In this document: in pieces, positions 282 to 62,713 of the stretch
Numbering within the stretch: position 1 is the first letter of the stretch
Layout of the letters: each line of letters opens with the position of its first letter
NCBI GenBank assembly: GCA_002269645.1
Contig: NIVC01001845.1
Location: forward strand, 118,257 to 182,256
DNA length: 64,000 nt
Reading direction: 5' to 3'
DNA from: Macrostomum lignano
Taxonomy: Eukaryota
Made by a program: the position numbers and the translations under genes
Notes under the pieces: generated by a model
Told to the model about the DNA's origin: nothing
Database searches by the model: none
Seen by the model: the letters and a program-made list of their open reading frames with translations, nothing else

Positions 282-1322
282 TCAGACGGTCTGGCCCGGA
301 TGGGTCCGCATGTGCCGGCGCAGGTGCGACGAGTCGGAGAAGGCCTTGCCGCACACTGGGCACATAAAATTCTTGGCCGCCGGCGGCCGATGCGTGGCCG
401 GCGCGCCGCCCGGCGTGTGGGCGTGCAGGATATGCCGGCGCAGGTGGTCGGACCTGGCGTAGGCCTTGTCGCAATAACTGCAGCGATGGTCCTTGGTGCC
501 GCTGTGGATCTTGATATGGGTGGTGAGGCTGTAGGACCGGCTGAAGGCCTTGTGGCAGGTCGGGCAGGTGTACGGCTTGGCGTCGCTGTGAATGACGGCG
601 TGCCGCCGCAGCCTGTAGCTGGAGCCGAAGGCTTTGCCGCAGTGTTCGCAGGGAAATGCGCCAGCTGAAGCGGCCGCCTCCGCCGTGTGCGTCGCCATGT
701 GCCGCTTGAGCTTAGCCGCGTCAGCCACAATCTTGCCGCAGGTGGTGCAGGGCAAGCCTCCGGCTGGCTGAGCCTGTTGCTGCTGCAGCTGCTGCTGGGG
801 CATCGGAACAGCCACGACAGCACCGCCGGGCTCAGTCTTGACCCACTGCTGCGGCTGCTGATGCTGCTGATGATGGGCCGCCTGCTGCTGCGGCACACCA
901 GGCTGCTGAGCTTCCACCTTCTGCTGGGGCAGTAGCTGAGCAGTCGGTATGATGAAGGAATGCGGCAAAGCTTGCAGCTTCACGTGCTGGCCAGCCTGGC
1001 CAAAAAAATCGCGCGACCCAGCTGTCAGAGGCATCTGGCCACTCAGCACTTGGCCAGGCAGGACTTGGCCAGATAGCATCTGGCTTGGAAGCATCTGGCC
1101 AGATAGAATTTGGCCAGATAGTACTTGGCCAGACAGGACTTGGCCAGGCTTGACCTCAATTGCCTGAGCATAGCCGCCAGAGGTTGTTGTCACTTGAATT
1201 GGTTGGCCATCTTTGCGGAGAAAGTCGGCAGGAGCACTAGTAATGATAGTATGAGCTGGCAGCAGTGACACGCCATCAGCTGTGATCAGCTGCATGGTGA
1301 ATGGCTGCTGGAATGACGCCAT
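282..1322 (-). CDS. C2H2 zinc-finger protein (5 fingers) with Gln-rich N-terminal half, 346 aa ORF
   Basis: Five C-x2-C...H-x3/4-H motifs (CTTCGK..HMATH, CEHCGK..HAVIH, CPTCHK..HIKIH, CSYCDK..HILHAH, CPVCGK..HMRTH) and an SDAKPY linker; poly-Q tracts upstream. Additional 5' exons cannot be excluded. Confidence 0.9.
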   Translation of the reverse strand: MASFQQPFTMQLITADGVSLLPAHTIITSAPADFLRKDGQPIQVTTTSGGYAQAIEVKPGQVLSGQVLSGQILSGQMLPSQMLSGQVLPGQVLSGQMPLTAGSRDFFGQAGQHVKLQALPHSFIIPTAQLLPQQKVEAQQPGVPQQQAAHHQQHQQPQQWVKTEPGGAVVAVPMPQQQLQQQQAQPAGGLPCTTCGKIVADAAKLKRHMATHTAEAAASAGAFPCEHCGKAFGSSYRLRRHAVIHSDAKPYTCPTCHKAFSRSYSLTTHIKIHSGTKDHRCSYCDKAYARSDHLRRHILHAHTPGGAPATHRPPAAKNFMCPVCGKAFSDSSHLRRHMRTHPGQTV

Positions 1323-2945
1323 AAGGCAATTGGGATATGATATTTGATAAAAGTATGTTGCATTCAGATTATTCTTATAGCCAAAACTAGTTATCTAAAA
1401 ATTAGAAATATATTTAAGTATAAAAAATTATTATAGTACAATGCCTGTTTATTCATATTTATTCATTTATAATAACAAAATGAATAACAAAAACAGATAT
1501 AATTGTAGAATATATATACAACCAATTGAACCAAATATGAACAAAATTGCTATAAAATTTATAAAGAAAATTTATAAATAGAATTTCAAGTATATTATAA
1601 AGAAAAAATATAAATAATATAAACCATAGCCCATAGGCTGGGTCTTAAGAAAAAGTATGAGTTATTATTAATTTTTAAATTATACAATAATATGAGCATA
1701 ATAAAATAATACTTTTTAGTTCATTATCATTGACAATTTTAACTAAGTTTTAAGGTAATAACTACCAAACTATAATTGATTATTGAGTTTATTGTTATAA
1801 ATTACTGCTAAATTTGATTTTGGGTTATAAGCTTACTTATTCAGTTGATTATACAGTATTTTAAAGTAGCTTTTTAATTTGCAAAATATAATTATTAGTT
1901 ATAATAGAGGCCTAAAAAAGTCAAAACAAAAAATGAATCAATAAAATAGGCCAAATTTGAATTTATCTTTAGCCATAGGTCCTCTAGCCTAAACCTAGTT
2001 ACCTTTACTAAATAGCTTCTAGCCTTCTACTGACATCTTTTAATTCTAGTAGCAATGCTATTAATAATCTAGGTATGGAACTACAAGTCTGATAATCCAT
2101 CTTAATGGCAATGCGTTAATTTCTTAAATAATACATAGCATAATCATAATAATAATACTATGAAATGAAAGCAGCAGCAAATTAAAACTGAGAGAATAAA
2201 AATATATTGTAGAAACTTCGAGTTTCACTACAGATAAATGGTTTTTGCTGCCAATGTATGTAGCTTCGTAACTTTTGACTGTTAAAGGACATACTTATAA
2301 CTCGCGAGTGGGGGTGAGCGCCTGAGCGGGGCCAATCAGGACCAATCCGAGGGCAAAAGCGTGGTTTTAAAAATCTTTAAAAAATATGGGCTTTCTTTTG
2401 AATGCAGATTAAAACAAAAAAATGTCCAAACATTGTCAGAAAATGACGCAAATCAATTAATAATAAAATATAGTGGCAGTTTTGTACAAGGCTACATAAC
2501 AGAAGAACTAAATTTATTCTTTAAAATATCATTTTCCGGACTAAAACTCATGGTTTTAGCCCGCAATTGTGTGGTGCCACAGGCATAAACCAATTTTTTG
2601 GACCATTTGCTATTTAACCGATACTAAATGTTCAAGATCTGCCTGTCTGTCGTCCATTTGTAAGACTTTTGACTTTAACTGCAGAAATATAAAAATCGAG
2701 AACGAATGATAAATCCTGTTTTATGTTACACGAAATAAGCCCCACTAAATATCGGGTGTCAAGGTGGAAAACATTACAATACATCGATTTCGAGAGGCCA
2801 TTAAAAACATTTCATGACAAAACACATGCATACGTTCAAAAGAAAGGTGTCGCTTTATTTTCTTACGTTTACACGTGTTAGCTATACCTGTACATGTACA
2901 TGTAGGTCTACATGTATACATGTAACATGCATGTATACTTGTACC

Positions 2946-3994: not shown

Positions 3995-5000
3995 GTGATG
4001 ACGCCGGACGGCCTGTCGGACTCCTTCGAGACATCCTCCGGGGTGCTCCAGGGGGACACTCTAGCGCCGTTCCTGTTCATCCTGGTGCTTGACTGGGTGC
4101 TGCTCTTCCTACCGACGAAGACGGCTTCCTACTGCGGCGACGCGTGGGTCGACGTCAACCGGAGAAACGGCTCAGCGTGCTTGGCTACGCCGATGACCTC
4201 GCCCTGCTGTCCTCGACCGTAAAGGGGGCGCCCAGCGCCAGCTGGACAAGCTGGTTAGCACTGCAGCGAGCGCCGGCCTGCATGGTGGTCAACACGAAGA
4301 AGACAGTTATGCTCTGCGTGCCGGGCGACATCTATCGAGGCCGCAATTTTCCTCCGAGGCGCTGACGGGCAGGTAACGGAGCTTCCGCGCTGTCAGCAGT
4401 TAATTCGTCTACCTCGGCGGTCTGGTACCTGACGTCCGCAAAGATCTGCGGCGTCACCGCGGGCTCGCTTGGGCTGCCTTTCGTTTTGTGAGGGCGGTTC
4501 TGCAGTCCGCGGCCCTACCTGACCGCCAGAAGGCGGCGCTGTTCCAGGCGGTGGTCGAGATCGTTCTGTTGTACAACGCCGAGACCTGGACGCTGATGGA
4601 TTCGCTCGAACAGCAAGTCAACGCGGCGCACGCTGGCCTTCTGCGCGCCGCCTTTATGATCAGCGACGAGCGGATCACCAACGCGGCACTCTATCGCCGC
4701 ACCGGCCTGGCCCGTCCAAGTGAACTGCTGCGACTTCGGCGACTCCAGCTGGCAGGCCACATCATCCGCGTCGAGTCCTACTGTCCGCAGCCGGTGCAGG
4801 AGGTGCTGCTGCTAACGCTGCAGGCACCCTACCGGCGCGGCCAGGCCCGAACTCGGCGTTTCGTCGACTGCCTGATGGCCGACGCTGGCGCCCCGGACTC
4901 TGCCGGTGGTGCGGCCTTTGTTCGCGCCCAGGCTCTGAAGCGTGCGCTGTGACGCAGCTAGCATTTTTCCACCTGACAGCGTGTTTTGTTGTTGTTGTTG
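3995..5000 (+). mobile_element. 5'-truncated, frameshifted non-LTR retrotransposon (reverse transcriptase C-terminal part)
   Basis: RT motifs SGVLQGDTLAPFLFILVLDWVL and GYADDLALL lie in different frames; downstream LFQAVVEIVLLYNAETWTL and RRLQLAGH are typical of RTE-like RT tails; (TTG)n tail at about 4985-5000. Confidence 0.85.
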
Positions 5001-11019: not shown

Positions 11020-12976
11020 ATGAGCTGCAGCACGTCTCTAGCGAAGATGATTCTCTTCATCTTTAATATTGTCTTCTTCCTGCTGGGAGCCGCCAGCGTC
11101 GGCGTGGGAATATGGGTTGCCGTCAACAAGAGCGACCTATTTCGAGTCATCAATCTAATCGATGCCCGAGTGGATCAGGGCGACAACAAGGGCCAGATAG
11201 ACTCGGTAGCCAATCAGAACGGCCTGGTCATGGTGGCCGGATTCATTCTCATCGGGATCGGCGCTTTCACGCTAGTCGTGGGCTTCTGCGGCTGCTGCGG
11301 CGCCGTCAAGGAGTCCAAGTGCCTGCTGGGAATGGTGAGGGTTTGTTTGCTGGTTTTGAACGGCTCAGAGCTCTTAAATTTTACGTTGGCTTAGCCGGTG
11401 GGATAAAGGCACATGGTTCGCTTTCGCGTCGCAGGACATTTAGCACTCACATGATTGACATCCCACTATTGACAACTCTGACAGTTTCTAACCAACACCT
11501 TTCGCGCTCACAGCTCTTAGTCGTGCTCTATACAGCTAGTATATTTTACGACTGTAAACATGTAGTAGGTGTCAATCCTTGAATGAATATACCATCAGTA
11601 CTTAAGTAGATTATTTCGATCTTATACGTTTTCTATTGTTGAAAGCTTACCTAGACTCAACTAACATAGCGACATATTATGGTACTTCGATGCGATTACG
11701 TTCCCGCCAACCGTCCGCAGTACGCCTTCCTGGTCGGCCTGGTGCTGGCTGTGGAGGTCGCCGCTGCCATTCTGGCTGCAGTGTACCAGGCTCGCATCCG
11801 CACCGCCGCCGAAGACGGCATGTACGGCCTGCAGGAGAAGATGTTCGTAGCTATGACCGACTACCTAAGCGACTCAACTAGCGATAATAATAAAACTGTT
11901 ACAACCCTGATCAACTATCTGCAGATGTCGGTGAGCTTTTCTGCGCATCTATTGCAGGGTGGGAACTTTATACGATAAATTATGCTGAAATGTTAAAATA
12001 CCACAAAGAGGGTGTCAACTTATGGCTCTAAAGAGGGCCCAAAGTAAAGCTTTGGACCAAACGGACTTCACTGGATACCAATTATCCCCTTTATCCCCTG
12101 GGAGACCAAGAGAGGGAGCTGGACGGTGTGTCTCAGCGTTTTAGCCATCGCTTTGTACGAATCGAGAGTTCCATTGTCAAGAATTAATTTGTTTGATTGT
12201 TTATTGGTGTCCTGTCAAAAGGTTTAGGCCTTCTGTCAGTATTCTATTAAACTGCTGGCTATGACATTCTCTGCAAAATTGCTTCAGTTCGACTGCTGCG
12301 GAGCCAAAAAGCCAGGCGACATTGCCAACAGCAGCAGCTGGCTCCTGTCCAACCGCAGCTGGGAGGGCCGCGAGCTTCAAACGCCCATCACCTGCTGCCA
12401 GATTCGCCAGGATCAAAAGACTGCAGCCGCTGCCCCAGGCTATAATTGGGTTTCCAAACTCAATGGTACTCTAGTGGATCCCAGCTGCCCCTTTACTGGC
12501 ACCACGCAGCACACTAAGGTAAGTTTGTTCTATATGAACCTACTGCTCTCCGTGTGTCAAGCGAGAGCGTCATTCTTTAGGAATGACAATACTGGAAAAT
12601 CCCCCCAACTGAATTACAGACTTGCTACAGTGGCATCATGGATTTCATCGGCAAGTTTGCCGGGCCACTAATTGGCGTCTGCGCTGGCATCGCCGTGTTT
12701 GAGGTGAGTCATTTGTTATTTAACTCTATACGTCACAGGCATGCGAATTTGTAGTCTTTTGCTTTCAATAAATAATTTCCGCAACGCATAAACATCATTA
12801 TTACATGCGTTCCTACTCTCGTAAAGCTCAGAAGGTTCGGAAGATCCTTGATTGAAATACTTCTACAAGACTTAATGAGAATTTATGATCAAAATGAGCC
12901 AATAAAAATCCCATTGCAGCTATTCTGCATCATCGTGGCCTGCTGCCTGGTGAGGGCCATCGAACCGAAGGACTGA
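11020..12976 (+). CDS. Tetraspanin 1 (298 aa); exons 11020-11334, 11721-11930, 12288-12518, 12620-12703, 12920-12976
   Basis: Four hydrophobic segments, GFCGCCGAVKESKCLL loop, EC2 with CCG, TPITCC and two further Cys; all introns GT-AG and phase 0; the joined frame is open to TGA. Confidence 0.93.
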
Positions 12977-14569
12977 GGCGACCAAAACCAGCTCACGAAC
13001 TCATTTGAGCAATCAGGATATTAAGATCGGGGACGAAGAGATGCGCTTGAGTCAATCGATTTTCTATCACAGCGAGTATATTTTAATTAAGTGTATTACA
13101 AAGGGCAATAATGTTGTTATTGCTTTTTTTTCTATTAATAAATTCCGATCCTTTCGTGAACTTAAGTGGATAAATGTAGAATTTTTTCTAGGCAATTATT
13201 TCTCTAAATAATGTGCGTCACATGAATACCCAGAACCTTTAAAACTTTTATGCCTTCAAAACGATTCAAAGTTTAAGACCCACCCTTTGGCAAGCCGAAT
13301 CAAGGATATGCCGTATTTTTACCTCTAAATAGCTACGGGATAAGCCAGGATTGTAAAAAGATAGTAATCAAAAGCTATTCTTTGAGTAGATGATCATGAA
13401 TCTTCTTTGTTTTAATTATGATGTAATGTTTTATTATTATTTCCGGAACAAAATCATTAAAACCTAGTTTTTCAATTTGTTGAAACAGTTAATTTGATCG
13501 CCGTCTTTGTGCAGTGACACAGATAAACCGATTCTGTTATAATCATAATCATAACCTTTTTGCAGGCGTGTATCTCTACGTCATTAATTAGGTTTTGTGC
13601 TTTTCTGGCCTCGCAATGATCGCATTCGATGCTTATTTTCTCCCATCAGAGTATTTATCGACACCAATATGCATGCATAGTTACTGTGTGGTACATTAAG
13701 CTCATTTTAAGTGAAGAGTATTTTTTAATTTATATTTTAATAAAATCTCGCTTCAATTTTTTCGGTTATTTTTTAAATTAACCGCCTGAAAGTTTTTTTC
13801 GAAATTATAAAACCGCAAACCGCAAAACTGTAAACAGGAAAGTTTATAAACTAATAACAATTGCATACATATATAACCATATATTTATATTTAATCTCCC
13901 TTATTGTACCGGCCAGCACAAGCTGTAAATAAGCATATAATACTTTATCACTTCAATGTGACAGAATTTCTATAGCGTTCAAGTTGTATTTATTCGCATC
14001 TTCGCAGTGTATTTTATTATATATAGCTAGTGGCAGCGATCAAGGCTGCAATTTTTTTACATTCCTGGTGTCTCCGGCGCACTGATTCAATCCAGTACTT
14101 ACAATTACGCTTTCTTGGATTTTTTGTCGAGCCCGTTTTTTTAAAATTGTTTTTTGGCCGCGTCAAGTTGTCATTTTGAAATTATTCGGAATCAGGCTAT
14201 TTTTGCCGTCAAGAAGTGAAAAATACACCCGATTATCTGCGTGTAAACAAAATAAGTTATCATGCACTCATAACAAAAACTGTCCAAATTAAGGTTTTTG
14301 CCTCTACTGACTTTGGTTATTATTTGTAAATATATTTTTGCAAAAAAATCTTAATAAGCATCAATGTTTGAGCATTTATTTGCTCTCAATGGGCGGAAAT
14401 TTTTAACGCAAATTATTGCCAACTGACGATGACCATTGGCAATGGCAAGTCAACAGGGTTTAATGTCGCGTCAATAATTCTTCGAAATGTGAGTAAATTG
14501 TCGCATTTCAATTAGAATTTAGCAGACTGTGTGTACTGACAGGGTGGGTGAATGTGTAGGCAATGCGTA

Positions 14570-15331: not shown

Positions 15332-15654
15332 CTTACAATTACCTATATTTAAGTCGCATTTGAGCGAAAGATGATGATAGATGATAAATTAATATCTACA
15401 AAACTTTCTCTAAACTGCTAAAGACAAAATGCTAGTGTGACCTGAAGTCGAAATCAGCTTAACAACTTTTATCGCGCTCAAATCATAGCCGTCAAACATC
15501 ATGAATTTTACCATAAACCTGGAAGACACTGCGAAATTCTGATTTTTTGAGGAACCATTATGTGTTTAAATTCAAACGCTTGGATTGAGAACGACAAACG
15601 CATAGCCACTTGGGTGTGCTTGCTAAACGAGGACCTCAGTCGGACACCTTCTCA

Positions 15655-17672
15655 ATGAAGCTGGTGCTGCGCATCGCTCTCATTATAATATGCAGCCTGT
15701 CCCTGCTGATCGGACTGGCTCTCGGAGGCATCGGCGTCGGCATTCTGGCCAATAAGACCAAACTGCGCTCCATGATCAACCTGATCGATGTCGGCGAAAT
15801 GGAAATGCTTGAAAAGTACAAGAAAGATGTGGGAGATTTAATCGACAAGTATGACGTAATCTCTAGAGTTGGCATGGCCTTCATCGCCCTGGGCTTTCTG
15901 GTGAGCCTCGTGTCCACCCTAGGATTGGCGGGAGCGTGCATGCTGCAGAAGTTCATTCTTTACGTGGTGAGTAGTTAAGGTATATAAGTTTTCTACTACA
16001 TGTAGGCGTGATGAAGAAGTGTTACTTCTAGAAAAAAGATATTCATAGCAAAAATCTTTGTCCATAACAGTTTTACTCGAATAAGGTGATCTATAAAACT
16101 GAAGAAGTAATTTGTTCTCAGGAAAATGTGCTTTTTTAATGGATTTGCATAGATAATTTTTGCTCCTTGCTTATTGGTCGCCCCGAAAGGAGGCATTTGA
16201 TTGCTAGTAAATTCTGAAAACAGGATTTGACTGTGACAGATTACTTAAACCATATCATCTAGCTACGTTGCGCAAACAAAAAGACTTTAAAGTATCACTA
16301 CAGCAGAAATAACAGCCTCGGAATGAAGAACGAAAATTTCATCATGTTTAATTTTGACCCCGCCAGTACACCGGTCTGATGAGCATCCTGCTCATGGCTG
16401 TCCTCGGTGTTGTCATTTACTGCGGTGTTTTCAAGCAAGAGATCGCCAATAAAATGAAGGATCGGATGCACCAACTGCAGGACAAATACTTCATCTCTAT
16501 CGTGGAACTCTTGAGTAACAAAGAAACTGAAAAGGCGATGCTGACTTTGGCTATCAACTTCATGCATTTTTCAGTGAGTGCTAACATTTTGCAATCAAGC
16601 TTAAATATCAAGGGTAATTTCAGTAGGGAACGAACTGACAATTTCTTATTTAATGCAAAGCTCTCTCCATCGAAATCAACAGCTCAGATGTTGTGGAATC
16701 CGCAAAGTAGGCGACGCTCGTAACAGCACCAGCTGGTTAAAGTCGGAGCGACGAATCATGCAGCTGATGGAGACTGGTGCAGACCTGTTCCAAGGCACTA
16801 AGACTAGTGACTACGATTATGCGGTCTCATCAGAGGTCAGGCACAGACGGTCCGCGATACAGAGCGACATGTACGACTACACCATATTTGATAATTCAGG
16901 CAGCGGAGGCGGGAAAGGCCAGCCGGACTGGATGCGCTACGACGTACCTGAGGAGCTCGAGATGCCGGATAACTATGCTGTGCCAACCATGCTGCCCGAC
17001 GGCTTCGAGATTGATGAAGATGTTTTCGAGGGCCTCACCGAAGTTGTTGAGGAAGTTGTTACTGAAACTGTCAAAGTGGTCACAGAGGTCCTGGACGAGG
17101 CACTGGTGATGCGCACTCCACTGACCTGCTGTCAGATGGAGAGCATCAAAAAGCTGCTTGAAAACGAGTTCGATGTCAGCCAAATGTACGACAGCATGGA
17201 AGAAATTTCCTGCATATTTGAAGAGGAAAACTTTGGCGTCAACAATCAGGTGAGTCTTCTGTGCCAATTTTGATTCCAATTTAACAGATCATTAAGATAT
17301 CAGAAGGAAGCGGTGGCAAGGTAGAATAAATGTAATTGAGTCCTTAGTACATAAAAGTATCCTTGTTGGGCTTTGTCTGGATCAGTTCCAGACCGCACTG
17401 GATGCTAGATTACCAGAACAGAGACATTGAAAATCTTCACACAACCTTCAGACATGCTACGTCGCTCTCTGGAACTACCTTGACCAATACGTCACTCCCG
17501 TCCTGGCCCTAGGCAGCCTTCTGATCATCCTAATGGTGAATTTTCATGTTAGTTTTTGTGCAGCAAAGAGGATGCAACATTTAAAAGGCTTTACTAAAAA
17601 AAAGCATTTCTATTTCAGGCAGTCAGCACGGCACTGGCGCTTGGAATTATTAACCTTGAGAACTCAACCTGA
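15655..17672 (+). CDS. Tetraspanin 2 with greatly enlarged EC2 loop; exons 15655-15966, 16367-16573, 16683-17249, 17452-17535, 17619-17672
   Basis: Same 5-exon, phase-0 layout as tetraspanin 1; CCG, TPLTCC, SC and TCY cysteines; four TM segments; frame open to TGA. The start codon is the first in-frame ATG and an upstream exon is possible. Confidence 0.88.
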
Positions 17673-18503
17673 GGGTCTTAAAATGTTTTGTTATTTTTAT
17701 TGAGTTCCAGCACCCTGTGTGCTGACAAATTTTCTCCAAAAATACACTGTAAGAAATTGTAAAAGGAAAATTATTTTGCAATTGATCGTTTTTGATTTCT
17801 TGTATCGTATTGTATTTTACTGTACTGCAAAAGCAGTGTAGTTAGTCCTGATCTCTAAGACTGATCTCTACTTCTTGCTAAGGAGTTGCTATTTAGTTAT
17901 TGTTTTTTAGACTGAGAAAAATTAACTCATAGTGAAATAATGCTTTTGCAGAAAAAATCAAATAATTTTACCTAATACATGCCTAAATGACAAGACTCAT
18001 GACGAATTTCTCAGGTTAATTGCTGAGATGCCAAAGCTCATGGAGTATCGCTTATCTACGGTAAAATGACCTGACGGGATCGTTTGAACTTGTTCCTTAG
18101 CTGATAAAGTAAAGTAGGCGTGGTATTTTCTGGGCAGTACCAAACGCTGCACAGACTTATCAAAAGCAAACTCTCAGATGAAATTGTAAAAAACGGGGAC
18201 CAAGTTTTCATAGCCACGTTGGCTTTACAAAACTGGCTCAATAATCGCTGCATAGAACTTCCGTGTTCCTCTATGAACTCTTCGAGTCAACAAGCTTTAA
18301 CCCGTAGACACTACTCGGCAAACGATTAGCATTAGCAACTCAATATGTCTGTCAGCAAAACATCTTTACTATAGCCGTGTCAATAAAAAATTCCGGAGCA
18401 TCATTGAAACTCGTACTGTTCAATATTTCATTCAAGTCTGAGCACCTGAGAAGCCAATAACTTAATTGACGCTGAAACAAGGCCAGCAGACAACTTGAGT
18501 CTT

Positions 18504-21043
18504 ATGCCTGCGCCAGCCGCGAACAGTAAATCCTCCTTGAGCTCAAAATTACAGAATCAATGCTGCAGCTCCTGCGCTCAACGCTGCAAGTCGTGTACTT
18601 GCTCAGTGAAGCTGGCGCTGCGCATCGCTCTCATTATAATATGCAGCCTGTCCCTGCTGATCGGACTGGCTCTCGGAGGCATCGGCGTCAGCATTCTGGC
18701 CAATAAGACCAAACTGCGCTCCATGATCAACCTGATCGATGTCGGCGAAATGGAAATGCTTGAAAAGTACAAGAAAGATGTGGGAGATTTAATCGACAAG
18801 TATGACGTAATCTCTAGAGTTGGCATGGCCTTCATCGCCCTGGGCTTTCTGGTGAGCCTCGTGTCCACCCTAGGATTGGCGGGAGCGTGCATGCTGCAGA
18901 AGTTCGTTCTTTACGTGGTGAGTCTTTAGGAAATAATAAAATGCTTTGTTTGCCTGAATTCAAAACTTTAGACATGAAGTGACTTAATTGAACCGCAGTA
19001 CACCGGTCTGATGAGCATCCTGCTGATGGCAATTCTTGGCGTTGTCGTCTACTGCGGTATTTTCAAGGAGCGGATCGCGGAAAAAATGAAGGACCGAATG
19101 CTTAAACTTCAAGACAAATACTTTGTTTCAGTAATTGAACTCGTACAAAACAACAGTACGGTCAAGGCAATGCTCACTTTAGCCGTCAACTTCATGCATT
19201 TTTCGGTGAGTAAGTTTGGCGAATAAAGTATGAAAATATATTAAGCCAGCCAATTACCATATCGCCCATGAGAATTTATGCACTCAGAACACTCAGCTAC
19301 ACACACTTTGAATTCTATGTACACATTGAAGTTTTGAAAAGACAACTCACGATTTCAGTATCTGTGCATGCTCTTGTGAAGAAAGTCTGTCACACAATAG
19401 CCGTAAAATGAATAGCTGTGTCAGTACCATTAGTTGGTTCAAATTTGCTCTATTTTAGCAGTTGGCCCCACAAAAGCATATATTTGACTTTCTTGAATGG
19501 ATTGTAGAAATTAAAGAAAACCTATTGGGAAATTTGTTTCTTGGGCTCTAGAGAAGTTGGGATCTAATTCGCACTAGAGAAGTTAAAATAAAATTGTACC
19601 TTTAAACCTCTGTACATTTTGTTCGTCACCAGCTCAGATGCTGCGGCATCCGCAATGTAGGCGACGCTCGTAACAGCACCAGCTGGAAAAATTCAGAGCG
19701 ACGCCTCATGCAGCTGATGGCGGCTGGGGCGGACCTGTACGCAAGCTCTATGAATGGCGAGAATAGCAACGATTACGATTACCTGTACGAGGGGTTGTTT
19801 GAGGCCAGGTACAGACGGTCTGCGATACAGAGCGACATGTACGACTACACAATATTTGATTACTCGGACTACGGCTCAGGTGCGTCTGGCGGAGCTGGAG
19901 GCGGGCAAGCCCAGCCGGACTGGATGCGCTACGACGTGCCTCCGGAGCTGACGATGCCGCCTGATTATGCTGTGCCGGACATGCTGCCTGGCGGCTTCGA
20001 AATTGATGAGGATCTTTTCGAGGGCCTCACCGAAGTTGTTGAGGAAGTTGTTACTGAAACTGTGAATGCGGTCACAGAGGCTCTGGACAGCGCTCTGGTG
20101 TTGCGCACGCCTCTGACCTGCTGTCAGATGGAGGGCATTAAAAAGCTGCTTGCCAACGAGTTCGATGTGAGCCAAATGTACGACAGCATGGAAGAAATTT
20201 CCTGCATATTTGAAGAGGAAAACTTTGGCGTCAACAATCAGGTGAGATGTTGATGGAGTTGTTTGCATCAGTAATATAGGCTTTGGTGTGTAGTTGGTTT
20301 TTTATAAATGTTAGTTAAAATTTTTGAAAATGATATGGAGCATTTGTTATTATGGAATATAGCAATAGCATTGTGTGGCAAAGTTGGACGCTAGAAATCC
20401 CATCTAAATCTAAGCCATACTCATTTGAGATTTGATGAGAAATAGAAATATGAGAGTAGTGAACTGTCTTGGAGAAAACTGATCCAAGAGCACTGGAGTA
20501 ATAAGACAGAGTGTGGTTTACTCCACTTTAAAATCTCTGCTAATTGGCTAAATACGCTCAAATTTAAAGTTAAAGTAATTGAAGTCTGGTCTATACTAAC
20601 TATTATGCATACGTTACTTACAATTAAATATCAAAGTAGTTGTTAGAAGGAATTGTTTCACACTACTGATTAAGATAAAATATTAGCTCTGTGACGCCTT
20701 TGAATCTGAAGAAAATTAGTGCCTAGAACTGTACGCTGCAAATCTTAGACAGTCAGTAAGTTAGACAAAACACATTTATGCGAACCCGCAGACCTGCTAT
20801 AACGCTTTGTGGCTCTACATTGACCAGTATGTAACCCCTGTGCTGGTTCTGGGAAGCCTTCTAATAGCGCTAATGGTAATTATCACTTTATTTTGACGTT
20901 TTTAAGGCCCATTCACACCATTTTTTCTCTAATCGATTACAAGCAAGCAAGATTTTCATTTTTAGTATATACGAGGCCAACTCCTCCGATGGAGGAGAAA
21001 GGGGAAGAACTCCCATCACCGGAATTCCACCGCCATCAAATGA
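18504..21043 (+). CDS. Tetraspanin 3, paralogue of tetraspanin 2; exons 18504-18917, 18999-19205, 19633-20241, 20792-20875, tentative last exon 20966-21043
   Basis: Exons 1-4 clearly homologous to tetraspanin 2 with matching GT-AG sites. The last exon (YIRGQLLRWRRKGKNSHHRNSTAIK*) is chosen from a strong acceptor and open frame but is not homologous, so it is uncertain. Confidence 0.82.
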
Positions 21044-21572
21044 GTCCAATTTTTGAGTGATCACACAAAATTTCAGTTGATGATTAACGAATCTTTGACA
21101 ATCACCTCAGTTTTTCACGCTATCAACTGACTTTTACAAGTGATCGCAAGCGTTTCACACTGCAATCAACGGACATATACTGAGGAGAATGACTGGGCTG
21201 GGGTTTAGAGGAGGGTCATGCAAGTATTCCAATTTGTTGCGCGAGCAATACTGTGCGCACATATCTCCAGCTGAGCCCAAAATCGTACATATTTTCAGCA
21301 CGTTTGAGAAAAAAATTTTGAGCTTTGAATTCAATACCAGTGTACAGTCTGTATCAGAGTACAAAGGCCAGAGCTCTTATTGATATAACTGTCGCGAGCT
21401 AACAAAAACCCTAGCACCCAAACTTTCCCGATCGTCCATTTTCCTGGTATTTCGATTGTCAGGGTGCCGAAGGTCGTATATAGAGCAGGATTTTCTTGCA
21501 CTTTGTTTACCAGGGGTTCCAGCGGCAACCAACAGGCGCTGTTTTTTTCACGCTTGCTCATTTCACTTATGT

Positions 21573-21958
21573 CAGGGGTCGGAAAACTTTTTTACCCCAA
21601 CGGCCAGATAACAACCTAGAGCATGACTGCGGTCCGGAGGAAGGAGGAGATTAGAGGGAATAAAAAAGAAAGAAGGGAGATAGGAGAAGGGAGAGGCGAG
21701 AGAATAAAGGAGCAATGAGGAAGGTGGAGAGGAGAGATGAATTTAACTAGGAGAGTAGAAAAGAGAAGAGAGAGGGAGAGTAGGAAAGAGAGAGGAGACG
21801 AGAGAGGAGAGAAGAGAGAAGAGAGAAGAGCGCTGAGAAGAGACAAACAACGAGCGGGCCGGATTGCTATTGTGCAGTTTCAAAGGACCGCGAGGGCCGG
21901 ATGAAGAAGCTTTGCGGGCCGCATTTGTGGCCCGCGGGCCGGAGTTTGCCGACCCCTG
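21573..21958. mobile_element. hAT-type MITE with GA-rich interior
   Basis: TIRs CAGGGGTCGGAAAACT / AGTTTGCCGACCCCTG; flanks ACTTATGT and GCTCATGT (6/8 match). Related sequences at about 29145-29500 and 41005-41300. Confidence 0.7.
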
Positions 21959-23320
21959 GCTCATGTGATGGAAAATAATAAAACAGTTAACAACCTGACT
22001 GGTGAGATGGCCAATCAATTTTAAAACGACAATCAGACTAGACGGAGAGTTGTTGAAATAGAGTGGCTTGAGTTGAATTTTGTGTGTTGCGCAACTTGGG
22101 GTGCTGTGTAGGAGGCAAGCGACCAATGTACAGCGTTTTAGTTGATCAACTGGCCCTCGCGTTATTGACTTTTGTCGCTGAATTTGAAAGTATTCTAAGT
22201 TAGCTGAGATTTCAAGTGATCACAGAAAAAGTTAGAAATTCTGCGTGGTCAAACGAGTCGTGTGATTTGGTCTTTCATTTGATTGCAGTGTGAAAGAGCC
22301 TTTAAAACTACTAATTGAAGCCAACACCCACGGCACAGAAAGTGTACAAGCCTGATGATTAGAAGCACAGTGTGAGCCTGCGTACAGTATTGGCGCTTGT
22401 ATGTGCTCAGGGGTCGGCGGAATTTGGCGGAATCGCCTCAACGCTGCTTGTGAGCCGAAGTCGTTGCGTCATCACACGCACGGCAGTCGGACAAATATTG
22501 CTATTGCTATTACTACCATTGTCATTATTACCGTGAATTAAAAGGAGAATTCCTCTGCTACAATTTCAGACAGTCAGCATAGCAACGGCAACAGCGATCT
22601 TGTTAATTGACAGTTAAAGAGACCCGGGCTGCATTTTTTTACTGAAATCTGCACGCTATTCTATTTTGTTTGAAGTGCTTGTTTCATTTTTATTTAAAAG
22701 TAAATTTATGAAAAAATAAGGGAACTTTGCTTTTGATATAACAAATCAGGTTATTGTTTATCATTATTTTTGCTATTACATGTGGCTGTAAGCTTCTATA
22801 AGATTAGCCGAATCTACTTATCTTGCTGATCACCGTGCTTAGAATAATCTTGGCTATAGTGTTAGGCAATAATAAGAGTGTTATATCGTGACTAACTATT
22901 ACCTACGCGTGCCATATTTAGTGCTATATAAGTAGGCGAGTGTCTTTACATTGAAGATCCTTCCCAATGTTTTGAGTCCAAATCCACCAGTCGTCCTAGC
23001 TAGACTACGATTAAGATTTTTTATAATCCAATGAAACTAAATGCTTTAAAATATGCGACTTCCAATTTAGTGAAAAGATTTTTCAATATAAAATGTACTT
23101 TTATTCGGTTACCTTACTTGCTCACTAAGGGTTCGGACGTCTAGACCATAGACTGACTCTTACAGTCCCAGGGAGTGCAGCTCGCAGCCTTGAGTCACCG
23201 CTTTAGAGAATAGACGAGTCCCAAATCAACTCCACTGCAGTAAGCGATAACAGCTTAAACAAGCAACAATCTAAGGAACCTGCTTTGAATCGACACGCAC
23301 TGACTCGTTGAGTTCTCATC

Positions 23321-24511
23321 ATGTCCAAATGCCCACTGGCTGTCACTGGAGTGGACCCCGCCGTGCTCAAGTATCTGGAAGATGGCTTCAAGAAGCTGCA
23401 GAGCAGCTCCACCTGTAAATCTAAGCTGAAGAAGTTCCTCACTAAAGAAGTCTTTGACAATCTAAAGAATCTGAAGACAAAAACCTTCGGGTCTACCCTG
23501 AAAGACGTCATCCAGTCGGGTAAGTTTCAATGAAAAATATAACTAAAGAGCAAATGAAGCGCCTGCTTGAAAGCTTGCCACCCTCAATCCGTCATAGGCA
23601 TCGAAAACCTCGACTCTGGCGTCGGTGTGTACGCCCCAGACGCCGAGGCCTACACCGTGTTTGCCGATCTGTTCGATCCAATCATCCAAGACTACCACGG
23701 CGGCTTCAAGAAGACCGACAAGCACCCCAAGTGCACCATGGGCGATCCGAACAAGTTTGGCGACGTCGATCCCCAGGGCAAATACGTCGTGTCGACGCGA
23801 ATCCGCTGCGGTCGCTCCGTTCAGCAGTTCCCGTTCAATCCCAACATGACCCAGGAGCATTATAAGCAACTGGAGGATCTGGTCTCCAGCACTCTAAAAG
23901 GACTCTCTGGCGAGCTGAAGGGTACCTACTATCCCCTGACAGGAATGACCAAAGATGTGCAGCAGAAACTCATCGACGATCACTTCTTGTTCAAAGAGGG
24001 CGACCGTTTCCTGCAAGCCGCCAATGCTTGCCGCTACTGGCCCACTGGTCGAGGAATCTTTCATAACGACAACAAGACCTTCTTGGTTTGGATCGGCGAG
24101 GAGGACCATATGCGCATCATCTCGATGCAGAAAGGCGGCAACATCAAAGAAGTGTACGCCAGACTAGTTAAGGGCGTCGAAGAGATTGCCAAACGGATGA
24201 AGTTTAGCCACGACGATCGGCTGGGATTCCTCACCTTCTGTCCGACCAACCTGGGCACCACGATTAGGGCGTCCGTGCACATCAAGCTGCCACTGCTGGC
24301 CAAGGGCGGACACGACGCGCTGCAGAAAGTGGCCGACAAATTCCAGTTGCAAGTACGCGGCTCGGCTGGTGAACACTCGGAGGCAGTGGGCGGAATGTAC
24401 GACATTTCCAACCGGGAAAGAATGGGACTCACTGAGTTTGACGCCGTCAGCAAGATGTTCAAGGGCATCACTGAACTCATCCGCATGGAACAGGAGCTGG
24501 AGAAGAAATAA
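23321..24511 (+). CDS. AK: Arginine kinase (phosphagen kinase), 370 aa; exons 23321-23519 and 23598-24511
   Basis: [22 protein letters not shown] guanidino-specificity region, [36 protein letters not shown] and [13 protein letters not shown]; one 78-bp phase-1 GT-AG intron. Confidence 0.96.
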
Positions 24512-35374: not shown

Positions 35375-36643
35375 TCAAGCTAACTGCAGGTTGCTCAGGT
35401 ACGACTCCAGCCTGTTAATCTCATTTTTCAAAATTTCCTCTCGCTCGCGAAATCCCATGTAGCGACTCAGGGCCTCCTCCTCGGCTGCCGCGGCGGCAGC
35501 GGCCCCGGTGAACCGGCGGTGCTGCGGGCCCTGGCTGACGGAGCGCCGGCGGCCGCCACCTCCGCCCAGGTCCCCTGCGCCGGGCCAGTCTTGCTGAAGA
35601 CTCCGGGCCAGGGACTCCACTATCGAGTTGCCTGCGGGGCGGGGGAGGTGCAGACTGCTAGCAGTGCTGGGGCGCCATGTCAGGTGGATCGGGAGGAATG
35701 TGCAGGCTGCATCTGGCGGTGCTGGGGCGCCATGTCAGGTGGATCGGGAGGAATCTGCAGGCTGCATCTGGCAGTGCTGTGTCAGGTGGATCGGGAGGAA
35801 TCTGCAGGCTGCATCTGGCAGTGCTGGGGCGCCATGTCAGGTGGATCGGGAGGAATCTGCAGGCTGCATCTGGCAGTGCTGGGGCGCCATGTCAGGTGGA
35901 TCGGGAGGAATCTGCAGGCTGCATCTGGCAGTGCTGGGGCACCATGTCAGGTGGATCGGGAGGAATCTGCAGGCTGCATCTGGCGGTGCTGGGGCGCCAT
36001 GTCAGGTGGATCGGGAGGAATCTGCAGGCTGCATCTGGCGGTGCTGGGGCGCCATGTCAGGTGGATCGGGAGGAATCTGCAGGCTGCATCTGGCAGTGCT
36101 GGGGCGCCATGTCAGGTGGATCAGGATCTGTTTACAGGACCAAAAAGACCAATATTGAACGAAAACACACGTCAGAACTCAGGCTCAGGTGTGAGTCATG
36201 ACGAGCTCCTCACCCTGCTTCATGGCTCCATCTCCATCCTCTGGCCCAGTTCTCTGCAGGTCTCCGGGCCGGCCCTTGCCCAGCCCGTAGCGCTGGTTCA
36301 GGAAGTACAGGCTGGTGTTGTCAGGCGTCCACTGCCCGACCTTCAGCCTGACGGCCACCTCCTTCTCGTTGTAGTCCTTGCGCAGCTTGTAGTCGGGAAA
36401 GTGCTGCTCAATAATGCGATTGCACTTGTCTACGCTGAGCTCGCTCGGCCCCTTGATCTCGAAGATGCAGAATCGCATGGCCTGCGTGCCTCCGAGCTTT
36501 CTGGTGAGGATTTTGTTTTTAACGGCAAACACGCAGCTGGTGCGGTTGCAGGCGGCCTTGACGCGCGTGTCGCTGAACATTTTCAAGCTGGCGTCTGTGA
36601 TCTGCAGCAGGTACTGCTTCTTGTAGCTTAGTCCGGCGTACAT
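35375..36643 (-). CDS. Uncharacterised protein (at least 228 aa); exons 36643-36214 and 35631-35375
   Basis: Phase-1 donor (CAG G|GTGAGG) matches a phase-1 acceptor (CCCGCAG|GC AAC) to give one open frame with GC-rich codon usage and a C-terminal coiled-coil-like REREEILKNEINRLESYLSNLQLA. Family not recognised; may have upstream exons. Confidence 0.6.
35660..36125. repeat. 55-bp GC-rich minisatellite, about 8 copies, intronic
   Basis: Unit CATGTCAGGTGGATCGGGAGGAATCTGCAGGCTGCATCTGGCAGTGCTGGGGCGC; one copy is truncated. Confidence 0.92.
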
Positions 36644-37321
36644 ATCTTGCAGATCGCTATATTTTAACTATTCTTCTTATTGAAACTTCTGCACTTAATG
36701 CCAATGGTAATAATGCATTTAAGCCTATCCAAGTTAAAGTGGCTTATGAATTACGAGTATAAGGATCGGGGCATAGACAAGACGCAAACTTCTCACGGAA
36801 AAGCCCCGGTTGGGTCATAAAGCAAAATAAAGCAAATTTTAGACAAAGACGTGGACATAGGCAAACTTTTAGATGAAATCAAAATTTATCCCTGTTTATC
36901 ATTTCAAGACAGCATCTTTGGTGTTTAGTAGCATTGAAGACTTTTTATGCCTTTTTAGGGTAATAAAATAGTGAAATTTTAGCATCGGTTCTGATCCTTG
37001 GTTTACGGCTTCCAAAGCGCACCTCAAGTATTCTGTTCTTTGCAAACGTGAATTCTACGCCACTACCTGCATTTTTGTACCTAAAAACAAGAGTCTTGTC
37101 AGACAAAAAGGAAGCGTCATGTAAAACATAAATGAAGCGTCACGTGAAACTTAGGGAGAATTTCTGAAATTTCAAGGCTTAATGTCAGAAGCTACATGTA
37201 GGTTACTCAAAAATTTGCATTGAAAATTGAAATTTAAAAAAGATTATTGCACTAGCTGAGATAAGGATTATTGCACTAGATAAGGAAATTGTTGCATAGC
37301 TTGCTGGGGGTGATTGCCATC

Positions 37322-37710
37322 AGTGGGGATGCTTGCTATCGGGGGGATGCTTGCTATCAGGGGGGATGCTTGCTATCAGGGGGGATGCTTGCTATCGGGG
37401 GGGATGCTTGCTATCGGGGGATGCTTGCTATATCAGGGGGATGCTTGCTATCGGGGGGATGCTTTCTATCAGGAGGGATGCTTGCTATCGAGGGGATGCT
37501 TGCTATCTGGGGTTGCTTGCTATCGAGGGGATGCTTGCTATCGAGGGGGATGCTTGCTATCGAGGGGATGCTTGCTATCGAGGGGATGCTTGCTATCGGG
37601 GGGATGCTTGCTATCAGGAGGGATGCTTGCTATCGAGGGGATGCTTGCTATCTGGGGTTGCTTGCTATATATGGGGGTTGCTTGCTCTCGGGGGATGCTT
37701 GCTCGGGGGA
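37322..37710. repeat. About 17-19 bp minisatellite
   Basis: Repeated GGGGATGCTTGCTATC with variable G-run and spacer. Confidence 0.9.
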
Positions 37711-38064
37711 ATTGCTGAGATGTCAAGGCTTCCGGGGGGAATCGTTGAGATGGCAAGACTTGGGGGAATTGCTAAGATATAAAGGCTGCGGTCAGAAGCA
37801 GCTACATGTCGTTTATTTAAATTTTTTATTGCATTTCTTGTTTGCTCACCAACGGGAGATGTAAACTGCTAGTTATCCACTAACAGTAGAAGGATGAGAG
37901 GTTAAATATTCTTGGTGCAAAAAGTGCAAACAAGCAGTTAGCCGCAAACAGTACAACTGCAATTAAAAGATTCATCAGGAACAGTACAATCGAAAATATA
38001 TACTCACGAAAGCTACCCCCTAAGGGGGTTGGCTCAACGCAACTCGCTAGTCAAACAGTCTCCA

Positions 38065-44046: not shown

Positions 44047-45180
44047 GATTGCTGGCAGCTGGTTTTTTTAGCCCAGTGCAATGCTTTCAAACTAGCTCTC
44101 TCTATTGCCAGCTGATGGGGGTGGCAATTTATATGCTATCTCTTTCTCAGTCTCTCCTTACCTCTCCACTGCCCGTTTTCTAAGTTGGCACTCACTGTCG
44201 GTTGCATTACTATTGCCATATTTCTCTCTCGCGAGTTGACAGCAGCGCCTCTGTCACTCTCCTGGGGCGGCGGGAGCTGCAGTGAAGGGCAGAGAAACTC
44301 TCAACAGCTCGATTGGACTCGAACCACTTGAGAGACTGAGGGAGATAGACATGGAAAAGCTCTGCTTTGGTTTTATGCCGTCTCAACTCAAGTTTCGCAG
44401 GTTTGAGTAGCAAAATTATGCACGTCAGCAGCTCAATCTGTCTCCAGTGGCTCGGCTCCTGTCACGGCCTTTGCTCGTATTATCGACTTGCTTTTTCCTG
44501 TTTTAAAAGCCTACACATATACTCGGCAACATTGAACAGTCGTCCTCCACTCATCCCGATCCCTCCTCGCCCAGCCCAACTCTGCGACACAAGTTGCGTC
44601 ACTCAAAAGTCAACACTGAGCTAGAATTTACTGCGCACTCTCATAGGTGCCGAATTTTTTTATGTTGTTGACTGAGTATAGCTAGGTTTTTGCACATGTG
44701 CTACTGACAGTAGTTAGAAGATCTTGCAGTTTTTTACACACTTTATCACGCCATAAAAGTATCAGCCTTTCAAAACTGGTCCGGTGCGAGTGTCCCTAAA
44801 ATGATCCATGCACAAAGATAGCGGATGCGTTGGCTTTGGCATAAAAGTACAAAGAGAACTTGGTGAACAATGATTTTGCAATCACGCCATAAAGCAGGCT
44901 TTTTAACCCATTTTATTACAGTTATCCTGCTTCCAAAGGGGGGGGGTCAAATATTTATTTACTCGCCCTGCCTACTTATAGTAGTGTGAAAAAATGCCAA
45001 AATAACAAAGCTGTAAAAAGGCTGAAATCGTAAAATCGCACCAGGTGGACGGCAATAAATTGGAGCTGAGAGAGAAGAAAGCTGATCCGGCCAGGTGCTT
45101 TATAATGAAACAAAATTGGATGGTCATTATTGACCTGTGCCTTGTGTCTCAATATGAAGTTCCTGTCTTGTTTGTCAGAT

Positions 45181-45849
<669 letters not shown>

Positions 45850-46521
45850 TTCCTCTCACAGCTCTCCCCTAGCAGCCCTCCCCGCTGTGAGGAGTTTATT
45901 GCATCGTAAATTCATTAGTCAGGATATGAATACTCGTGGGATCGAGGGGAATAGGGATATCCAAATTTTGATGGAGAGCGGGGACAGCCACATCGCAGCG
46001 ACAGTTTCCCATTTTTGGATCAGTTTATTTGAGAATTTTGTGCGCCAGACTGCTCAGCAAGTTGAGCCTCACCCCCGCACTGGCGGTTGACAACCCCAGC
46101 CTACACGGGTCCCGGCATCATGAGGGGATCTAGCTTGATCTTCCCAACAGGCGCTCTAGGGATGGATCTCAGAGTCTTCAAGATAAAAAATCCGTATGCG
46201 AGGTCAGGTGCGACCGCAGCTGTTTCCTAGAAGAAAATGCCCTCATTTTTTCCGGCTAGGCTCAGAAAATCCTCCCTGTTGCGGATTTATGCAAATCAAA
46301 GGGGCCTTTTTTCGTTTCTTTCCCGGACAAGATTTAAGGGTTAACGATGAGCTTAGAACGGCGACAGAGATGATTTAGAAATTGCTTCCGGCTTTGCAAG
46401 GTTCTGGCGGGGATTAATAACAATTGAAAGTTGCTTTTTCATTGCTAGCTGTTCTGTTTTGAATACTGACTAATTTGAAGTCAAGGTTGTGAAGTTTCTG
46501 CGACTACATTGTTTTTTGCCT

Positions 46522-60800: not shown

Positions 60801-61629
60801 AGGAGTCAGACTGCTTTCCAGATTTCGCAGATTTCCATCTATTTCGCAGATTTCTTACTTCAAATAGCATATCGTGTGGGAAACTACCAGGTATCTAGCG
60901 GGGCAGAAATAATGACAGAATAAATTATGCAGCTTAATTCTGACTAATCCAACCCAGTAATAGTGTCTAGCGTCCCTGAGCAGTTATCTTATTATTTCAC
61001 AACAATATTAATATTTCTTTCATTTATGTCCGGTCATGCACTCTGTAATTCAATTCAGATAGCGGGGTGTTGAGCTACAGCAGAACTTCTTCCTCTCTCT
61101 CTAACTTTTTTATACTGTGTTTAAGTTTAAGTTTAAGCGTGTCGTCGACGTTTGCGCGCTTGCCCTGTCATGCCATTAGCTGGACTCTCCCGCTGTGGTC
61201 AGCAGGGGAGGTTGGGGTGGGGGGTTGCCAAAATCGATCAAATTTTGCCAACTGTTGCATTTGATATCGATCAAGGGGGCTTGAGTAGATGCCCGGGGTG
61301 GGGAACTGGCACTAAAAATAGCAATCAGTGCAGCGTGGAACCACCCACTGAGCTGTGAGCCTCTGCACTCTTTCTGCTTCCTAATTTTTCATAAGTTCGC
61401 CCCAGTCAGAGTTATATCGTATTTCCCAATTCAGAACTGTTTTCCCGTCGCAGCAAAAATAGCTGAGCAACAGCTGCTCACGGGGACAATATTTAGTAGG
61501 AAAATCTGTGCAATAAAGCTCTGAAAAAAACAGAAGAAAGAATTCGGAAACACGAAGCACGTTTGAGAAGAAGAAGTAGCGAAAATCAAAAACTAACTAT
61601 TGGCAGTAACTACCGTTACATTGCTAGAT

Positions 61630-62304
<675 letters not shown>

Positions 62305-62713
62305 AGGTAAAGAAACAGCCAGGTACGAGCTGAATATCCTGGTATAAAGTTTGTCCTCATCAGCCGACGGAGCTGTTTGCACAGGGCTTAAGAAAGCATG
62401 TGCCCATATGCGCGCATAGTGTGCTCTGTGAGAGAAATTCTGCTTTCGATTTGGAAATACGAGCGCACACTTTCGCTTCCGTTCCCAGGAAGGTAGCTGG
62501 GATGGGATTTGCAAGGCCGTGGGGACAAACAGGGATGTTTGGATGGCCGGCACACAGACCAGGGTGTACAAACAGAATGACTGCTCAATGCTAATGAAAT
62601 TGCTGCTGGGACAGTGTTCACGGAAGTGGATTGACGGGATATGGGGTTGAATGAGTTATTTTATATTGTCCAGCCAATATCAATCAGAAAATACATTGGA
62701 ATTTTTAGTATAT

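Follow-up and report, generated by a model that had tools for sequence, protein, structure and literature searches.

In tetraspanins, the variable subloop between the CCG and PxxCC motifs of the large extracellular loop (EC2) is the surface that specifies the partner, and in some members, such as peripherin-2/ROM1, the uroplakins Ia and Ib, and Tspan15 (of the TspanC8 group), an enlarged EC2 head carries a specialised function. Such an enlargement has a folded structure held by additional cysteines, and is not known to exceed about 150 amino acids (aa). Outside the family, the DLYDYYPEE region of GPIb-alpha and the N-terminus of PSGL-1 are anionic sulfotyrosine recognition segments. In this work we analyse a stretch of 64,000 nucleotides from the flatworm Macrostomum lignano (contig NIVC01001845.1, positions 118,257 to 182,256 of the forward strand; hereafter the window), which carries, between 11.0 and 22.6 kb on its plus strand, three tandem tetraspanin genes, T1, T2 and T3. 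T1 has an ordinary EC2, whereas T2 and T3 have between those same two motifs an insertion of 113-127 aa, which is real, acidic, tyrosine-rich and, by prediction, mostly disordered. We hold the anatomy and evolutionary history of this insertion, as described below, to be probable (roughly 0.85); the suggestion that its acidic loop may serve as an anionic, possibly tyrosine-sulfated, tag for binding partners is put forward tentatively, and may well prove wrong.

The described proteins closest to T2 and T3 are the six-cysteine (CD63-like) animal tetraspanins of Pfam family PF00335, including the Schistosoma mansoni vitellocyte protein '1610' (PMC3499410), a comparison that does not imply orthology to CD63. 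Tetraspanins have the CCG motif and two to four cysteine pairs in EC2, with PxxCC present in more than half of the members; their EC2 typically measures 76-131 aa, and the human proteins 204-355 aa (PMC8761850). All three M. lignano proteins score above the curated PF00335 cut-off of 32.1 bits (T1 148.3, T2 69.6 and T3 54.6), the best-matching stretch of T2 and T3 spanning only the part before the insertion. Like the CD63-like proteins, T2 and T3 have four transmembrane (TM) helices, CCG, PxxCC and two further EC2 cysteines; each of the three proteins has six cysteines in EC2 (CC, CC, C and C, in CCG, TPxTCC, SCIF and QTCY), and C176, C177, C322, C323 and C364 are invariant in a 40-sequence alignment. 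AlphaFold2 models run with 40 aligned sequences (mean predicted local distance difference test, pLDDT, of 80 for T2 and 76 for T3) place the helices at residues 2-32, 68-96, 99-125 and 364-406 of T2 and 30-66, 102-130, 133-159 and 412-452 of T3, with a small first extracellular loop, the large EC2, and pLDDT above 90. Foldseek fills ranks 1-9 of its PDB matches with tetraspanins (CD53, Tspan15, PRPH2/ROM1, CD81, CD9 and uroplakins; probability 0.80-1.00), the enlarged-EC2 structures 7zw1, 8jj5 and 8esv being among the best of them, at E-values that are weak (about 6e-3) because of the insertion. The gene architecture is also that of the ordinary neighbour T1, with five exons at homologous positions and every intron GT-AG and in phase 0.

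What sets T2 and T3 apart from the typical family is an EC2 of about 238 and 252 aa respectively, taking the ends of TM3 and TM4 in the models as its limits, in proteins of 407 and 453 aa. In addition, the consensus of 40 tetraspanins has an Asn in TM1, FxGCCGAC in TM2 and a Glu in TM3, all of which are found in T1, whereas T2 and T3 are without the Asn, the Glu and a GCxGA-type motif, and carry IIICSLSLL, TLGLAGAC and LLMAVLGVV instead. T2 and T3, named 'hypothetical protein' or 'Tetraspanin' in public databases, are divergent six-cysteine M. lignano tetraspanins: they show every defining feature of the family and depart from it in polar TM residues, in the TM2 motif and in the length of EC2, the lengthened part being the variable region between CCG and PxxCC.

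The distance from CCG to TPxTCC is 26 aa in T1 (CCG-AKKPGDIANSSSWLLSNRSWEGRELQ-TPITCC), 139 aa in T2 and 153 aa in T3. These spacings, obtained from the spliced translations, agree with those of a preliminary description of the locus made from the sequence alone, whose further statements that the flanks remain alignable (GDIANSSSWL against GDARNSTSWL; TPITCC against TPLTCC), that all six EC2 cysteines are kept and that the insertion lies within one exon are borne out as well. In both genes that exon is the third (T2 exon 3 begins at 16683, and T3 exon 3 ends at 20241), and it is open throughout, over 189 and 203 codons. The composition is as had been described, rich in Asp, Glu and Tyr, with a Gly/Ser linker and a Glu/Val end: the T2 segment has 29 Asp/Glu, 14 Lys/Arg and 6 Tyr (net charge -15), that of T3 has 28, 10 and 11 (net charge -18), the tyrosines almost all adjoin Asp or Glu, and both a Gly/Ser stretch and EGLTEVVEEVVTETV are found in the insert.

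If part of this segment were an intron, spliced out to leave an ordinary EC2, the insertion would be an artefact of annotation; a long-EC2 paralogue (PAA79579.1, discussed below as P0002) does have an intron inside its insert. For T2 and T3 this is very improbable. A run of 139 codons would stay open by chance with a probability of about 0.0013, the three indels between the two inserts (4, 2 and 8 codons) are all in frame, and the proportion of nonsynonymous differences (pN; 48.3 over 324 sites) is lower than that of synonymous ones (pS; 26.7 over 93 sites), with a ratio of nonsynonymous to synonymous rates (omega) of 0.46. The sequence before TPLTCC is purine-rich and, read by eye, shows no plausible acceptor. 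The gene models guided by RNA sequencing (RNA-seq) retain the whole exon, insert included, where the preliminary description had allowed that transcripts might splice it out. The T2 and T3 translations match PAA63420.1 (P0094) and PAA63421.1 (P0093) residue for residue, the gene spans on NIVC01001845.1 equal the annotated ones (2018 and 4114 bp), and T1 is annotated as a 298-aa tetraspanin immediately upstream of T2. Since the deposited M. lignano annotation was built from a genome-guided RNA-seq assembly (PMC5730564), the long exon has indirect transcript support. In an exact-protein look-up T2 and T3 were found solely on the M. lignano genome contig, and no transcript-like assembly contigs matched.

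The models of T2 and T3 give the insert a common layout of helix, disordered loop, proline-spaced coil and helix (Table 1). The first helix is short and follows GDARNSTSW..SERR (SERRxMQLM...; residues 198-210 in T2 and 232-248 in T3). After it comes a loop predicted to be disordered over 45-70 residues, with pLDDT below 50 at about 211-259 in T2 and 254-322 in T3, which holds DYDY, R(H/Y)RR, DMYDYTIFD and the Gly/Ser run, its tyrosine motifs being DYDY, DMYDY and DYSDY. The coil is extended and has the pattern PDW-x5-P-x5-P-x5-P-x3-P...D, and the second, Glu/Val-rich helix leads back into the disulfide knot at TPLTCC. The insert alone matches no Pfam family, and its best match among PDB sequences, an acidic stretch of nucleolar protein 9 at E of about 0.15, was dismissed as spurious. 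With pLDDT below 50 over those 45-70 residues and no relative in Pfam or the PDB, the insert is not a folded domain; of the 'acidic domain' in the preliminary description, the acidity stands for T2 and T3 and the domain does not. Here lies also the difference from peripherin-2/ROM1, the uroplakins and Tspan15: T2 and T3 have an enlarged EC2 as these do, but they add no cysteines, disorder is predicted for half of their extra sequence, and in the PDB sequence search the insert showed no similarity to any of these proteins.

The disordered loop also holds one R-X-[KR]-R match per protein, at a homologous position: RHRR in T2 (residues 226-229, 16839-16850) and RYRR in T3 (residues 266-269, 19807-19818). 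A furin-type proprotein convertase could cleave after it in the exposed luminal loop, resulting in a two-chain tetraspanin joined by the EC2 disulfides that bridge the insert, with altered conformation or partner binding. The motif is kept despite the strong divergence of the residues just upstream, which favours a processing site, yet a four-residue motif is weak evidence, the stretch around it is 94% identical in nucleotides and may be a conversion tract, and neither P0002 nor the other paralogue P0003 (below) nor T1 has it. To our knowledge there is no precedent for convertase-processed tetraspanins, and we regard such cleavage as unlikely.

An exhaustive HMMER scan of 1.84 billion cluster-representative proteins, including UniRef and NCBI, returned 91 hits, of which only three lie below 1e-30, all from M. 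lignano: a fused model of T2 and T3 (P0001), PAA79579.1 (P0002) and PAA88730.1 (P0003). None of the other 88 has a long EC2, the CCG-to-PxxCC distance being about 12-45 aa in every case that the motif scan located properly, and none of the 91 has its best alignment in the insert region alone. Metagenomes scanned with the EC2 alignment of the four long-EC2 sequences gave 110 pattern matches, none of which was confirmed by tblastn. The literature search found no paper describing these proteins or any tetraspanin with such an insert, and hence no already described subfamily in which, as the preliminary description had entertained, it is widespread.

P0002 and P0003 each carry a homologous insert, on cores that share 38% and 26% identity, respectively, with T2. 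That of P0003 measures 118 aa; that of P0002 measures about 102 aa in the annotated model and would reach about 128 aa if an unannotated acceptor further upstream were used. The four proteins have in common SERR/SNRG-L..L after the NSxSW site, an invariant P-x-W-x5-P-x5-P-x5-P-x3-P...D (P81, W83, P89, P95, P101, P105 and D113 in their alignment, A3), and the helix before TP(L/I)(T/S)CC. They also group together in a neighbour-joining tree built without the insert columns (bootstrap 215/300; 294/300 for T2, T3 and P0002). Since the helices and the proline stretch are common to two older paralogue groups, the insertion predates T2 and T3 and has a single origin. Judging from these comparisons, it defines a small tetraspanin clade, so far of M. 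lignano only, which upholds the earlier proposal of a lineage-specific subfamily; the acidic, tyrosine-rich loop is a later specialisation of T2 and T3. Introns inside the insert are absent from T2 and T3; P0002 has one before the PxW motif, and P0003 one after PDWLK.

The models of these two paralogues show peculiarities of their own. In the P0002 gene (8749-9860 of locus L001, NIVC01000627.1) the intron within the insert is about 1.1 kb long and consists nearly entirely of a GATA/GATT microsatellite. Splicing to an in-frame acceptor upstream (ttcttag|GGCACT) would lengthen the protein by 26 residues, among them IPNWLKKQLP, which corresponds to QPDWMRYDVP; this conserved motif is omitted from the annotated model, whose choice of acceptor may be wrong. 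In the P0003 gene (NIVC01000176.1) two exons are exactly duplicated in tandem (12394-12755 and 13471-13832 of locus L002), with the repeated 61 residues included in the deposited protein; either the assembly is at fault here or the duplication is very recent.

The divergence between T2 and T3 is a mosaic. Their introns, as had been noted earlier, do not align (identity of 45-55%, compared with 46-48% for a shuffled intron), blastn confines the homology to the exons and about 6 nt on either side, and similarity falls to random 5 nt into each intron, right after GTGAG. Synonymous divergence (dS), on the other hand, changes from exon to exon: it is 0 in exon 1 (104 codons), 1.15 in exon 2, 0.36 on average in exon 3 and 1.9 in exon 4. 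Exon 1 is 97-99% identical, with zero synonymous differences (15638-15972 and 18589-18923), and the final 55 nt of exon 3 are identical (17195-17249 and 20187-20241). This mosaic indicates that T2 and T3 are old duplicates with recent sequence exchange, and that part of the similarity of their inserts reflects recent gene conversion and not selection. The conservation of the insert between the paralogues, claimed in the preliminary description, is therefore real as similarity and partly a product of conversion. As a candidate for strong selection RRSAIQSDMYDYTIFD was dropped, its few differences making conversion inseparable from selection. The pattern suggests conversion tracts that end at exon edges, possibly with cDNA or RNA as the template, and the exon-bounded identity may be a clean case of exon-limited gene conversion.

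Given the partner-specifying role of the CCG-to-PxxCC subloop, we favour the following mechanism for the T2/T3 loop, doubtful as it must be at this stage. The two helices of the insert would act as a stalk, holding the loop several nanometres above the EC2 head; the loop, flexible and anionic and with tyrosines placed in classic contexts for sulfation, would be a tag that could capture a basic partner or ligand, and the tetraspanin might then recruit the captured partner into its own membrane microdomain. In a rule-based scan the sulfation-type acidic context fits three insert tyrosines in T2 and five in T3, and none in P0002 or P0003. These tyrosines stand in an acidic, turn-rich, cysteine-free extracellular context that is predicted to be disordered, which makes sulfation itself a candidate. 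The T2/T3 loop is like the GPIb-alpha and PSGL-1 segments in being extracellular and predicted disordered and in its tyrosines clustered amid Asp and Glu; unlike them, it is hosted by a tetraspanin loop rather than by a mucin-like stalk or a receptor N-terminus, and the likeness is compositional only, with no homology.

Several observations weigh against this tag. The loops of P0002 and P0003 are near neutral (net +2 and -1) and have no Tyr, and since these older paralogues do without acidity or Tyr, the loop could be tolerant of change and its acidic character a product of drift. The loop, disordered in the models, is also the least constrained part; the putative stalk has its geometry from AlphaFold2, and only four sequences cover the insert. 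Gene conversion could account for much of the T2/T3 identity within the insert: R.RRSAIQSDMYDYTIFD has 3 differences in 54 nt between T2 and T3, and the Glu/Val helix has 15 identical codons. In addition, the gene identifiers Mlig008214, Mlig034462, Mlig031131, Mlig017728, Mlig023202 and Mlig024572 were not found in the full texts searched or in the supplements of three M. lignano papers.

Most of these points would equally suit a tolerated spacer, in which the hypervariable EC2 subloop has expanded, the loop is functionless, structural importance is limited to the helices and the proline stretch, and the acidic, tyrosine-rich composition is drift kept similar by gene conversion. Such a spacer would explain why the loop has so low a pLDDT, why omega reaches 0.46 in the insert compared with 0.09-0.14 in exons 2 and 4, why the length differences of 4, 2 and 8 residues all fall in the loop, and why conversion tracts are found inside exon 3. 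It would not readily explain, however, why pN is clearly lower than pS over the insert, why DYDY and the acidity are retained in the most diverged part of the loop (dS of 1.3-1.7), where synonymous sites are saturated, or why the composition is so extreme, with a net charge of -15 to -18 and 6-11 tyrosines almost all next to Asp or Glu. We regard the spacer as a serious possibility, about as likely as the anionic tag.

The same Asp/Glu and Tyr content, along with a Gly-rich stretch beside DYSDYG, could also fit a loop that holds Ca2+ or cationic extracellular material, or one in which tyrosinase-made dihydroxyphenylalanine (DOPA)/quinone cross-links tie the membrane to eggshell or adhesive material. 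A CD63-like tetraspanin of S. mansoni is expressed in vitellocytes in the same pattern as tyrosinase 1 (PMC3499410), which, by analogy with another flatworm, may be a lead in this direction. The ligand, adhesion or cation-binding role put forward in the preliminary description is likewise a proposal from composition. The Pfam search, however, gave no EF-hand or other known calcium-binding motif in the insert. Flatworm eggshell precursors, moreover, are much richer in Tyr and Gly than the T2/T3 loop, and the two variants are, even taken together, rather improbable.

To go back to the anionic tag, it is tempting to take it a step further and to imagine that a Macrostomum-specific clade has turned the EC2 subloop into a stalk-mounted arm, whose sulfated or DOPA-modified tyrosines would act in trans as a handle for adhesion or cross-linking, on basic extracellular material such as egg, sperm or adhesive secretions. 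We give this extension little credence; if true, it would depart from the lateral, in-membrane partner binding that is typical of tetraspanins.

Some features of the three genes stand apart from the insertion. The first 34 codons of T3 exon 1 (18504-18605) would encode a cysteine-rich N-terminal extension, QCCSSCAQRCKSCTCS, absent from T2; the start ATG of T2 corresponds to GTG in T3, and a homeologous T3-like copy (PAA70722.1) begins at MKLAL too. The cysteine cluster of this putative extension looks like a juxtamembrane palmitoylation patch. Intron 4 of T3 (20876-22569) measures 1694 bp, compared with 83 bp in T2, and holds a low-complexity block rich in AG (about 21640-21830) as well as GC-rich sequence resembling an inserted repeat element. 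Older UniProt models (A0A1I8JCT8, A0A1I8GD49 and A0A1I8GFX2) merge T2 and T3 into proteins of 778-798 aa by splicing the donor of T2 exon 4 (17535) to an AG within T3 exon 1 (18555; ttacag|AATCAA), and one of them has a frameshifted stretch where the CCG motif of T3 should stand. Such fusions could be read-through, polycistronic transcription or a trans-splice acceptor, in a species that practises trans-splicing.

Elsewhere in the window, an arginine-kinase-type phosphagen kinase gene, annotated with 370 aa, lies directly downstream of T3 (23322-24511, plus strand; Pfam ATP-gua_Ptrans, E = 4e-76), and further genes are given in Table 1. Very long (GTCT)n/(AGAC)n microsatellites and several blocks of longer-period tandem repeats (44979-46087, 61596-62344, 35384-36628, 37280-37861 and 49091-49569) yield spurious long open reading frames in all frames. 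Open frames at 4093-4949 (plus strand) resemble, by eye, a fragment of a retroelement reverse transcriptase; Pfam gave no match for 4404-4949.

Table 1. Coordinates of the tetraspanin genes, of the parts of their insertions and of other genes in the window.
Feature	Position	Strand	Basis
T1 gene, ordinary EC2, 298 aa, comparison gene	11020..12976	+	spliced translation; Pfam PF00335 E = 3.4e-43
T1 exons	11020-11334, 11721-11930, 12288-12518, 12620-12703, 12920-12976	+	spliced translation
T2 gene, long EC2, 407 aa	15655..17672	+	all junctions GT-AG, phase 0
T2 exons	15655-15966, 16367-16573, 16683-17249, 17452-17535, 17619-17672	+	spliced translation
T2 CCG-to-TPLTCC segment, aa 179-317, 139 aa, 113-aa excess over T1	16698..17114	+	translation
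T2 acidic Tyr-rich loop, predicted disordered, aa 211-253, GTKTSDYDYAVSSEVRHRRSAIQSDMYDYTIFDNSGSGGGKGQ	16794..16922	+	pLDDT <50 at 212-214, 217-253, 257-259
T2 proline-spaced stretch, PDWMRYDVPEELEMPDNYAVPTMLPDGFEID	16923..17015	+	pLDDT 61-74; P/W/D invariant in four long-EC2 paralogues
T2 29-residue amphipathic Glu/Val helix (predicted), aa 285-313, leads to TPLTCC	17016..17102	+	AlphaFold2 pLDDT 81-86
T3 gene, long EC2, 453 aa	18504..22617	+	spliced translation
T3 exons	18504-18917, 18999-19205, 19633-20241, 20792-20875, 22570-22617	+	spliced translation
T3 CCG-to-TPLTCC segment, aa 213-365, 153 aa, 127-aa excess over T1	19648..20106	+	translation
T3 acidic Tyr-rich loop, predicted disordered, aa 249-301	19756..19914	+	pLDDT <50 at 254-302 (AlphaFold2); motif scan
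T3 proline-spaced stretch, PDWMRYDVPPELTMPPDYAVPDMLPGGFEID	19915..20007	+	alignment
T3 29-residue Glu/Val helix (predicted), aa 333-361	20008..20094	+	AlphaFold2 pLDDT 78-88
C2H2 zinc-finger protein gene	285-1394	-	
Coiled-coil gene, weak intermediate-filament match	26.5-30.8 kb	-	
EF-hand (calmodulin-like) gene	43.0-44.1 kb	-	
Cadherin/protocadherin-like gene, several cadherin repeats	49.8-52.6 kb	-	

By roughly doubling EC2 with a putative helical stalk and a highly charged loop predicted to be disordered, the clade of T2 and T3 shows how far the tetraspanin scaffold stretches, and provides a natural example of a peptide module displayed by a tetraspanin. Should the loop be no more than a tolerated expansion, this is a curiosity of one genus; should it be sulfated or bind a particular partner, it would offer a tractable case, the flatworm being open to transgenesis and RNA interference.

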